Positions 40,301 through 43,300 are shown, numbered from the stretch's first letter. The stretch: DNA of 64,000 nt from Ranitomeya imitator (GCF_032444005.1 NC_091286.1:708908001-708972000); one strand, 5' to 3'. Numbers and translations are program-made. Notes: generated from the sequence alone by a model not told the origin.

Positions 40301-43300
40301 TCCTCATTTCTGTGGGCTGGGTCGGGTACACTCTCCTCCTTTCTGTGGGCTGGGTCGGGTACGCTCTCCTCCTTTCTGTGGGCCGGGTCGGGTACGCTCA
40401 CGGATCCCAGGGAGGATATTTTTATCATCCCACAGCTGCCACCAATATGTCACGGATCCCAGGGAGGATAACTTTATCGTCCCCACCACTCACACCAATT
40501 TGTCATGAACCGGGATTGTTTGGTTGCCCCTGTTTTTTTTTTGTTTTGTTTTTTTTTAAGGGGATTTATCTATATCCCACCTCCCAGTTCTGGTTTGGAA
40601 CTTGCACCTCTCTGGCACCCCCCCCCCCCCCTTACCCTCAGGTCAGACAGGGTACTGCACGTAGGATAATTAGTCGCCAGAAAGGCTGCCTTACTTTGTA
40701 GTGGCTAATGGGCACACTGCAGCAAAGGCGATATAACTACTCCCACTCAGGCGCGAACAATAATTATCAACGCCGTCCGTCGCTACCAGGTTTCCAAAAC
40801 GCACAGGACAAATCCGCTGCCACCAGCTCCGATTTCTTAATAACTGGTCCGGAGCCCACCCAGATTAGTAGCGTAATTCACTTCAGAGGACGTGACAGTA
40901 CGTTATAGAGTAAGGAGAAACTAAGCTAGTAATTTTATATTTTACTCCAAAAAAGGTAGGCAGTGTTTACAAAAGGGTAACAAGATATTATAAAATGAGA
41001 CGATTATGTATATACAGACGATTACAAATAAAAAGGGATTAAAGTTGAAAAAAACACTAAGGCTAGGTTCACATTGCGTTAAAGCAGCCTGTTCAACACA
41101 TGCGTTAAAAGGGCTGCGTTAACGCAAGTGCCAACATGCTAGCGCAGATAGAGCATCTGATAGCTCTATCTGTGGTAGCGGTGACAGACCCGGAAACGCT
41201 GCAGCCCACGTCCGAGAGTCGGTCACTTAATGACGGCACATCGCTAGAGCGTGCACTAGCGATGCGCCCGAAATAGTGCTTAATGGCAGCGTTAGCGGAC
41301 TGCTTAAACGTAATGTGAACCCAACCTTACAGTTCTTTCATATCATTCAATAGTACGCCATGCGGTGGCTGGGGAGGGGGTCTCGTACGCTCTCCTCTGT
41401 GGCGCGGGCTCTTGAACGCTCGCCTCTTCTCTGCGGGGTCGGGTACCCTCGCCTCTTGCCTTTGGCGTGGGGTCTCGTACGCTCTTCTCTTTGGCGCGGG
41501 CTCTCGTACGCTCGCCTCTTCTCTGCGGGGTCAGGTACCCTCGCCTCTTCTCTTTGTCGTGGGGTCTCGTACCCTCGCCTCTTCTCTTTGTCGTGGGGTC
41601 TCATACGCTCACCTCTTCTTTGGCGCAGGGTCTCGTACACTCTCCTGTTTGGCCCGGGCTCTCGTACACTCGCCTCTTCTCTGCGGGGTCGGGTACCCTA
41701 GCCTCTTGCCTTTGGCGTGGGGTCTCGTACGCTCTCCTCTGTGGCGCGGGCTCTCGTACGCTCGCCTCTTCTCTGTGGGGTCAGGTACCCTTGCCTCTTG
41801 CCTTTGGCGTGGGGTCTCGTACACTCTTCTCTTTGGCGTGGGGTCTCGAATGCTCACCTCTTCTCTGTGGCAGGTCTGCATGATCTTCAATGCTGGGGAG
41901 CTGACACTAGTCGAGTATGGAAGCAATGAGGTATTGGGGACCGTACGTACGGAGTTCATGAACCCCCATCTCATCAGGTGAGGGGTCTGAGTATATGGGT
42001 AGATGACACCAGAGCAGCCCGAATTCTCACCACTTGCCTGACCTCAACTTTATTACAGTGTGCGACTGAATGAGAGGAGACAGCGAGGCATGGAGGACAA
42101 CAAGAAGCTGGCCTACCTTATAGACATGAAGACTGTAGCTATAGGTACTGACCACATGTCCGGAGTGGGCCTTCAGTGGGCACCTGCCTGTCCGCGGCCG
42201 CCGAGCTGGCCTGCAGGGGGGCACCTTCCTGTCTGCAGCCGCCGAGCTGGCATGCGGGAGTCACCTGCCTGTCCGCGGCCGCCGAGCTGGCCTGCAGGGG
42301 GGCACCTTCCTGTCTGCAGCCGCCGAGCTGGCCTGCAGGGGGGCACCTTCCTGTCTGCAGCCGCCGAGCTGGCATGTGGGAGTCACCTGCCTGTCCGCGG
42401 CCGCCGAGCTGGCCTGCAGGGGGCACCTTCCTGTCTGCAGCCGCCGAGCTGGCATGCGGGAGTCTCCTGCCTGTCCGCGGCCACCGAGGTGGCCTGCAGG
42501 GGGCACCTGCCTGTGGGTATGAGGTGGGATTTGAGTGGTCAGATGATGGTGGTAGTAGGTCGTGCAGTAGACTAATATCCTCTTTCCTTCGCAGTGGATC
42601 TCCTCTCCGGATATAATTTGGGTCTCGTCACTCATGACGCCAAGATCGATTGGTTGGAGCTGAATGAGACCGGCCATAAACTCCTCTTTAGAGATAAGAA
42701 GCTTCGGGTGAGAGGAGATATCCTTCCTCAGGACCCCCCTGATCCCTTCCCACTCCCACTGTGTGGTACTTGTGGTGCCCCGGCCGTCTGTGACCTCCCA
42801 GCCTGCAGCTTTTACCCTTCCGGGGGCTCCTCATCTGGTCGGCTGCCTTGTTGCACCCAGTATGCGGTTCTGTATTACTATCAGCGTCCGTCTTCCCCGT
42901 CCCTGGCCCTGTACACATACACCAGTACTGACGGTTGTGTGGCCGCTGTTCCTTTGGATTTACCTTTATAGATACAGCCGCTGTACCTCCAGAGCAGAAC
43001 TCCCTGTGTTCCCTGACTGCTCGCTGGACGTTCCCTCACCCCCACTCTTCCCCATGCTGTACTGCTGAGGATGTCGTCTCACCATTGTGCCCCATTTTCT
43101 TTTTCAGCTGAACCTCTTTGATGTGTTTAATGGGCAGAAGACGACCATCCTGAATTACTGCTCCTACGTCCAGTGGGTGCCCGGGAGCGACGTGGTGGTG
43201 GCACAGAACCGGAGCAATCTGTGCGTCTGGTACAATATCGATTCCCCGGAGAGAGTCACCATGTTCCCCCTGAAGGTAGTAACAAGAGGGTCCTGTACAT

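Follow-up and report, generated by a model that had tools for sequence, protein, structure and literature searches.

Can the long terminal repeat (LTR) of a retrotransposon grow by taking in its own former primer binding site (PBS)? The question is raised by positions 40398-41376 of a 64,000-nucleotide stretch of the Ranitomeya imitator genome (GCF_032444005.1 NC_091286.1:708908001-708972000; hereafter the window), where LTR-end-like strings alternate with strings resembling tRNA 3′ ends. On the plus strand, PBS-1 (atcccacagctgccacca, 40427-40444) is followed by ata and by TGTCAC at 40448, and PBS-2 (tccccaccactcacacca, 40480-40497) by att and by TGTCATGA at 40501; every string and coordinate that an earlier sequence-only reading had given for this stack was recovered from the sequence. 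Tandem Repeats Finder (TRF) describes 40398-40505 as 2.1 copies of a 52-bp unit (83% matches, score 153), and TCACGGATCCCAGGGAGGATA, the first 21 nucleotides of the unit, is present exactly two times in the window (40398 and 40450), with 0 occurrences expected from 100 shuffles. A partial third module, which corresponds to TRF unit 1, is roughly 89% identical, as judged by eye, to 40452-40478 and directly adjoins a 33-bp minisatellite (Table 1).

All retroelement open reading frames (ORFs) in the window lie on the minus strand; the plus strand thus displays the antisense of the elements, and the primer-like strings are the complements of PBSs. Read along the plus strand, the order is internal region, PBS complement (tRNA-like, ending in CCA), a spacer of 2-3 nucleotides and then TGTCA, the end of the unique 5′ region (U5) of a 5′ LTR. 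The LTR at the locus therefore lies to the right of the stack, from 40448 or 40501 to about 41376, and not to its left as the sequence-only reading had it. The ORFs encode, in order, a SCAN-type gag, a zinc knuckle, a protease, an integrase and a reverse transcriptase (RT) with RNase H, and we take the placement of integrase before RT, together with a SCAN-type gag, to mark the Gmr1-like branch of Ty3/gypsy. Pfam domains RVT_1, RT_RNaseH, Integrase_H2C2, rve and SCAN are recognized in these ORFs with E-values of 1e-10 to 1e-39, and the closest proteins come from Ranitomeya imitator itself (87-95% identity), followed by those of other dendrobatid frogs. BLAST comparison against the window matches 40423-41058 to LTR copies at 18757-18941, 26789-27218 and 2837-3195 and, more weakly, to sister-family LTRs; the LTR body (40501-41056) is 83% identical to 26789-27218 and 82% identical to 2837-3195. 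The stretch is the U5 end of a Gmr1-like Ty3/gypsy LTR in a dendrobatid frog, seen on the antisense strand.

The canonical Gmr1-like Ty3/gypsy layout has one PBS, located outside the LTR (Goodwin & Poulter 2002; Gmr30/SCAN, Emerson & Thomas 2011). The frog elements share with that layout the TG...CA LTRs, 5-bp target site duplications (TSDs), 2-3-nucleotide spacer, 18-nucleotide PBS, integrase before RT and SCAN-like gag, but they differ from it in that at least one former PBS, with LTR-end modules, appears to lie inside the LTR. We consider it probable (roughly 0.7) that a module made of the U5 end, the spacer and the PBS was duplicated in tandem and that priming then took place from the distal site.

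The two modules are also found in a second member of the family, copy a, whose LTR has been split in two by the later insertion of another element, element B, and resumes beyond it. The order in copy a is PBS-1 (18761-18778), ata, TGTCAC at 18782 with 26 further nucleotides, PBS-2 (18814-18831), att and TGTCATGAACC at 18835. Identity between copy a, with its two-module stretch at 18761-18850, and the locus copy (copy c) is about 82%, and the two copies show no difference in the sequence of PBS-2. Left of PBS-1, copy a carries a normal leader that aligns well to the leader of element B. Instead of a single PBS outside the LTR, copies a and c thus have two or three sites of PBS type, and one or more of these fall within the equivalent of the B LTR. 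The sequence-only reading had named, as a result that would speak against it, units found only as a duplication at a single locus. This is not so, and the repeat is no local minisatellite, because copy a (18761-18850) and read contigs share the two-module form and contigs from sequencing runs X1 and X2 carry the third unit. Our own first reading of the stack, as a chance two-copy repeat at the edge of a minisatellite, was dropped because copy a carries both modules.

The position of the LTR boundary can be judged from element B, a complete sister element with a single PBS at 25381-25400, an LTR that starts with TGTCACGATTCAC, and minus-strand coding regions at 25201-23324 (SCAN, zf-CCHC and RVP), 23323-21794 (integrase) and 21529-20351 (RT and RNase H). 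When B is aligned with copy a, its PBS falls on PBS-1, its spacer on ata and its LTR start on the outer TGTCAC. By position, therefore, the working junction of the locus family would fall at 40448, and PBS-2 would lie 32-50 nucleotides inside the LTR. The segment 40448-40479 is the positional homologue of the TSD-defined LTR start of B and also resembles the LTR-end motif of L121, an element of the frog Pristimantis euphronides. The same PBS-spacer-LTR layout recurs in B (spacer att), copy a (ata), a separate element F and the Pristimantis elements, and 5-bp TSDs flank B (CCCCC), the solo LTR B′ (CCGTC) and the Pristimantis element L122 (GTAAT), with TG...CA ends. About 32 nucleotides inside the B LTRs stand TGTCACGAATCGGGG (3′ LTR) and cGTCACGGATCGGGG (5′ LTR), the counterparts of the inner TGTCATGAACCGGGG at the locus (40501) and of the Pristimantis LTR termini; the B stretch between the outer and inner ends is shortened and decayed.

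A longer form is present in B′, which is inserted in a 30-bp minisatellite. The first 32 nucleotides of B′ (58756-58787) consist of TGTCACGATTC, an 18-nucleotide Leu-type PBS fossil and ATT. This TGTCACGATTC is identical to the first 11 nucleotides of B, and the B-type start, inside the 32-nucleotide module, has decayed to GGTCAGG (58788). The truncated LTR copy Bq has the same arrangement. Extra units inside TSD-bounded LTRs, as the sequence-only reading had anticipated, are therefore found in B′ (58756-60189, CCGTC) and, in decayed form, in both LTRs of B, and in this sense the product expected of a dual-PBS template exists in genomic sequence.

A shorter form is found in the outgroup, for which we used L121 and L122. 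The LTR pair of L121 is 95% identical and its 3′ LTR ends with ...CCCCGGGTTCGTGACA; directly after its 5′ LTR come AT, a perfect 18-nucleotide tRNA-Leu(AAG) PBS and a leader homologous to that of the window elements (z = 9-11). The LTRs of L122 are 99.9% identical and end with ...CCCCGATCCTTGACA, followed by AT and a perfect PBS. The terminal motif of these Pristimantis LTRs, to which the inner end at 40501 corresponds, is an internal motif in the window families. The copies thus appear, from alignment, to form nested classes in which the motif is terminal in Pristimantis, is overlain by one module in A (the subfamily of the locus) and B, and by a second in B′ and Bq. Both the B′ solo LTR (arrays at 58511-58755 and 60190-60884) and the young L122 (1511-4500 and 11704-19979) sit with clean 5-bp TSDs inside large minisatellite arrays.

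The identity of the primer was assessed by scanning metagenome contigs with the 15 nucleotides of PBS-1 that precede CCA, using the letter at 40434 that is in the majority among reads. This query matched seven eukaryotic tRNA-Leu(AAG) genes called by ARAGORN, always exactly at the 3′ end (among them L017, twice, and L038, L043, L047 and L051). Against the 18-nucleotide tRNA-Leu(AAG) site, PBS-1 of the locus copy matches at 17/18 positions, with a single differing base, and the letter at 40434 in most read contigs is that of the tRNA; PBS-1 of copy a likewise matches at 17/18, and PBS-2 at 14/18 with one gap. The PBS-like strings of B′ and Bq retain the final 11-13 nucleotides of the site. The PBS of element B aligns to it with two 1-nucleotide insertions, despite LTRs that are 97.6% identical and long ORFs. 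All of these sites are best explained, by alignment, as versions of one tRNA-Leu(AAG) primer site, the enclosed ones being more damaged, and a decayed Leu(AAG) site is a simpler reading of PBS-2 than Leu(CAG). The sequence-only reading, which matched PBS-1 to tRNA-Leu(AAG/TAG), was therefore right that the units match a tRNA 3′ end. In its proposal that the U5 end grows outward, the enclosure of an old end and primer site is supported, but the different primers of the modules, and with them a record of past primer use, are not, because PBS-1, PBS-2 and the B′ and Bq fossils all best fit a single tRNA-Leu(AAG) site. A search of the window for tRNA genes and Rfam families found none.

These matches also bear on whether CCA-ending strings resemble primer sites merely by chance. 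The window does contain two strings of the form CCA-N(2-4)-TGTCA away from LTR ends (21013 and 33730). However, PBS-1 matches at 17-18 of 18 positions and a site deep in the LTR, described below, at 12/12, and six copies, as well as elements of another frog family, carry the modules at homologous LTR ends. Sites within five mismatches of the 18-mer number 12 on the real plus strand, mostly at LTR ends, whereas shuffled windows average 1.7 per strand. The tRNA-gene matches and the shuffled-window counts lead us to reject chance resemblance, whose probability is negligible.

A plausible sequence of events follows from reverse transcription. The module, comprising the last 10-30 nucleotides of U5 (ending in ...TGACA), the 2-3-nucleotide spacer and the 18-nucleotide tRNA-Leu(AAG) PBS, would have been duplicated in tandem more than once, perhaps because RT or host replication slipped on the template. 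tRNA-Leu would then prime minus-strand DNA at the distal copy, so that strong-stop DNA would include the proximal PBS, the spacer and the duplicated end, and after the two strand transfers both LTRs would end at the new ...CA. In standard reverse transcription, distal priming indeed yields a strong-stop product containing the proximal PBS and the duplicated end, which passes to both progeny LTRs. Integrase would accept the new end as a copy of the old one: every new terminus retains ...C-N-TGACA, the duplicated end, and integration would thus still work. The enclosed PBS and the old end would be free to decay, and inner decay is what the copies display. The middle leader can barely be aligned with the inner one, whereas it is about 89% identical to the outermost, and the inner PBS is the most decayed, which suggests that the outermost duplication is the youngest. 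The locus copy itself would derive from a form in which the PBS-1 module, too, lay inside the LTR.

Logan read contigs from four runs, which represent two organisms, were aligned with 40380-41060. Run X3 contains 44 contigs whose sequences immediately ahead of 40448 are mutually unrelated (agreement 0.33, median 119 nucleotides, among the matches listed), as would be seen at 3′ or solo LTR termini; this independently supports a junction at 40448. Contigs of runs X1 and X2 contain the 40398-40426 stretch with the diagnostic ATATTTTTATC and an intact TGTCA start, preceded by sequence that aligns to ...CCAATATGTCA; a three-unit form is thus present elsewhere in the genome. Other contigs have further inserted or shortened modules. 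Contig depth stays low up to 40472 and is at an LTR-like level from PBS-2 onwards, an observation to which we give little weight.

The stack might alternatively reflect nothing more than an ordinary duplication in tandem, either in the leader or in a region prone to minisatellites. The LTR would then end at 40501, PBS-2 would be the site that adjoins it, and the unit with PBS-1 would be a repeat internal to the element that does not contribute to LTR growth. This would fit the mere 2.1-copy, 52-bp repeat that TRF detects right beside a 33-bp minisatellite, in a window of which roughly half is tandem arrays, as well as a third unit that is cut by the array and lacks TG, and Pristimantis LTRs that end at the 40501-type motif. 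It fits poorly with copy a, where the normal leader adjoins PBS-1 and not PBS-2, and with the placement of PBS-1 at the PBS position of B. PBS-2 also matches the tRNA at only 14/18 positions, with mismatches 6-7 nucleotides from the priming end, the X3 contigs pass into unrelated flanks at 40448, and the modules of B and B′ lie inside TSD-bounded LTRs. We therefore regard ordinary duplication as quite unlikely and favour duplication of the module followed by distal priming.

A further tRNA-like site lies deeper in the LTR. The 12-mer CCGCTGCCACCA (40814-40825, minus strand) is identical to the last 12 nucleotides of tRNA-Leu(AAG) with its CCA; it is also perfect in copy a (26969-26980) and recurs with 1-2 changes in the LTRs of B, E and B′ (25857, 8558 and 59244) and of Pristimantis L121 (694 and 6874). 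The site lies 310-490 nucleotides inside the LTRs (about 310 at the locus) and may represent either a primer site enclosed much earlier or a site conserved for its function. The L121 site (694/6874) matches at 14/18 positions and its surroundings resemble the real junction at only z = 1.6, which is a hint only.

Such conservation suggests a different explanation, in which in-LTR tRNA-like sites are kept because they function, for example by binding additional tRNA-Leu or 3′ tRNA fragments or by permitting alternative initiation. Between copies a and c, which share 82% identity elsewhere, PBS-2, att and TGTCATGAACCGGG do not differ at all. The deep 12-mer is perfect in both A copies and shows only 1-2 changes in B, E and B′ and in the LTRs of L121, which can scarcely be aligned outside it. 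Gypsy, moreover, is documented to have two tRNA sites in each genome (PMC1635307). Retention for function nevertheless sits uneasily with the poor pairing of PBS-2 to the only tRNA identified, with the decay beyond recognition of its counterpart in B, and with the very young L122, which has no in-LTR site; the conserved stretch also contains few CpGs, which may account for its survival. We judge this explanation, which is compatible with growth of the LTR by module duplication, to be unlikely.

Several observations weigh against LTR growth by duplication and distal priming. The locus copy is a rearranged, truncated fragment without a coding part, interrupted by a MITE-like insertion and bounded by a minisatellite and by the array at 41377, so that alone it proves nothing about LTR ends; at its left edge (gc-TCACGG, abutting the minisatellite) there is no TG such as a clean integration end would have. 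The window contains no TSD-bounded LTR of subfamily A, and the U5 side is missing from the only A-type 3′ LTR present (2831-3835), where a minisatellite takes over. The first 90 nucleotides of the A and B LTRs have only modest homology (z ~4). Loose ends cluster at 40448 in one of the four runs among the matches listed, a cluster at 40501 is possible too, and contig depth is unreliable and cannot rank the parts of the stretch. The polarity of the nested classes is read from only two outgroup elements, and a dual-PBS element could in principle revert through priming at the inner site. Minisatellites also arise everywhere in this genome, so that tandem duplication alone is expected. An end related to the MITE-like element of the locus also occurs at 62347.

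Module duplication with distal priming may have operated repeatedly. We offer tentatively, at somewhat less than even odds, the idea of a recurrent ratchet in frog Gmr1-like elements, in which each round duplicates the module, shifts priming outward and leaves dated fossils. If real, the ratchet would be a general route of U5-side LTR growth that had not been described before; it may couple to the tendency of this genome to form arrays, and some sites may be kept for binding tRNA or tRNA fragments. The deep 12-mer, PBS-2, PBS-1 and the B′ module would form its series in the window.

The behaviour invoked here has parallels in the laboratory. Engineered retroviral vectors with two PBSs reportedly copy the proximal PBS into both LTRs when initiation is distal, a result credited to Voronin and Pathak (J Virol 2004;78:5402), and an HIV-1 (human immunodeficiency virus type 1) variant that keeps a dual PBS is said, from work by Li and colleagues (Virology 1997;238:273), to behave in the same way. 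The frog elements resemble these systems in having two tandem PBSs in the leader, of which the proximal one would be enclosed by a distal start. The vectors and virus are, however, laboratory constructs or culture-selected forms with no duplicated integrase end, repeated rounds or fossil decay, whereas the frog case appears to be a natural and repeated process that is fixed in families of high copy number. LTR length is known to change through tandem repeats and minisatellites within LTRs. The frog LTR differs from these in that the unit that is repeated straddles the LTR boundary and takes in the PBS, and duplication would thus move the boundary itself. In Ty3 and Drosophila gypsy, a bipartite or second tRNA-binding site lies close to the 3′ end and base-pairs with a different region of the tRNA (PMC1635307). 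The frog elements likewise have more than one genomic RNA stretch complementary to the primer tRNA, but the second Ty3 and gypsy site, unlike the frog modules, is not an old PBS beside an old LTR end (PMC1635307). A full-text literature search found no description of a natural LTR that encloses a former PBS, which is not proof of absence; as far as that search extends, known replication logic would here give rise to an evolutionary pattern not described before.

It is usually assumed that the PBS and the polypurine tract fix the LTR boundaries. If module duplication with distal priming is correct, it would provide a concrete mechanism for U5-side growth of LTRs and would build relative dating marks into the LTRs. 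Annotation tools that set the LTR end at the first tRNA-like site would mis-call such elements. The behaviour of dual-PBS vectors may therefore occur in nature, and several PBS-type targets per transcript would bear on PBS-directed host silencing.

Table 1 Positions of the stack, its flanks and related copies in the window
Feature	Coordinates	Strand	Remarks
33-bp minisatellite, 9.3 copies	40089..40399	.	Flanks the stack; 70% like the array at 41377-41870 on the opposite side
Outermost partial third module	40398..40426	-	LTR-end-like, sense ...GGGATCCGTGA; without terminal TG/CA
PBS-1	40427..40444	-	Complement of the 18-nt tRNA-Leu(AAG) primer binding site; position equals that of the element B PBS
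Spacer ata	40445..40447	-	3 nt between PBS-1 and the LTR end
Level-1 LTR terminus	40448..40479	-	TGTCAC + 26 nt; probable diverged duplicate of the inner end
PBS-2	40480..40497	-	Putative fossil tRNA-Leu(AAG) site, by position now within the LTR; identical in copy a
Old spacer att	40498..40500	-	String read at the locus
LTR body	40501..41056	-	Begins at the putative older, now internal end TGTCATGAACCGGG
MITE-like (miniature inverted-repeat transposable element) insertion	41057..41330	.	Terminal inverted repeats of ~30 nt; interrupts the LTR
LTR resumption, short	41331..41376	-	Weak alignment; then lost in a 29-bp minisatellite
Copy a, 5′ LTR junction, same family	18761..18941	-	LTR resumes at 26795 past element B
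Complete element B	18942..26794	-	LTRs 18942-20336 and 25404-26794, 97.6% identical; TSD CCCCC
B′ solo LTR	58756..60189	-	TSD CCGTC at 58751-58755 and 60190-60194
Bq, truncated LTR copy	6695..6724	-	30-nt outer module, arrangement as in B′

Tandem arrays are dense across the window, and three LTR copies lose their U5 side in a minisatellite (arrays and LTRs at 1-2831/2831-3835, 7488-8261/8300-9515 and 40089-40399/40398-41376). The 32-bp array at 1-2831 may derive from LTR-internal sequence, as judged by eye only. The 32-34-bp array at 7488-8261 was considered as an amplified end and PBS module and rejected, its consensus CATGACAG being in the wrong orientation. Element F (11269-16506) is a separate Gmr1-like element whose 454-bp LTRs share 98.7% identity; it has no enclosed module and a single, different PBS (complement gcccgcgttctccacca). 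A long interspersed nuclear element (LINE) ORF of 926 amino acids, with endonuclease and RT, occupies 31031-33811 on the minus strand between 41-bp minisatellite stretches at 30265-31015 and 33853-34632.

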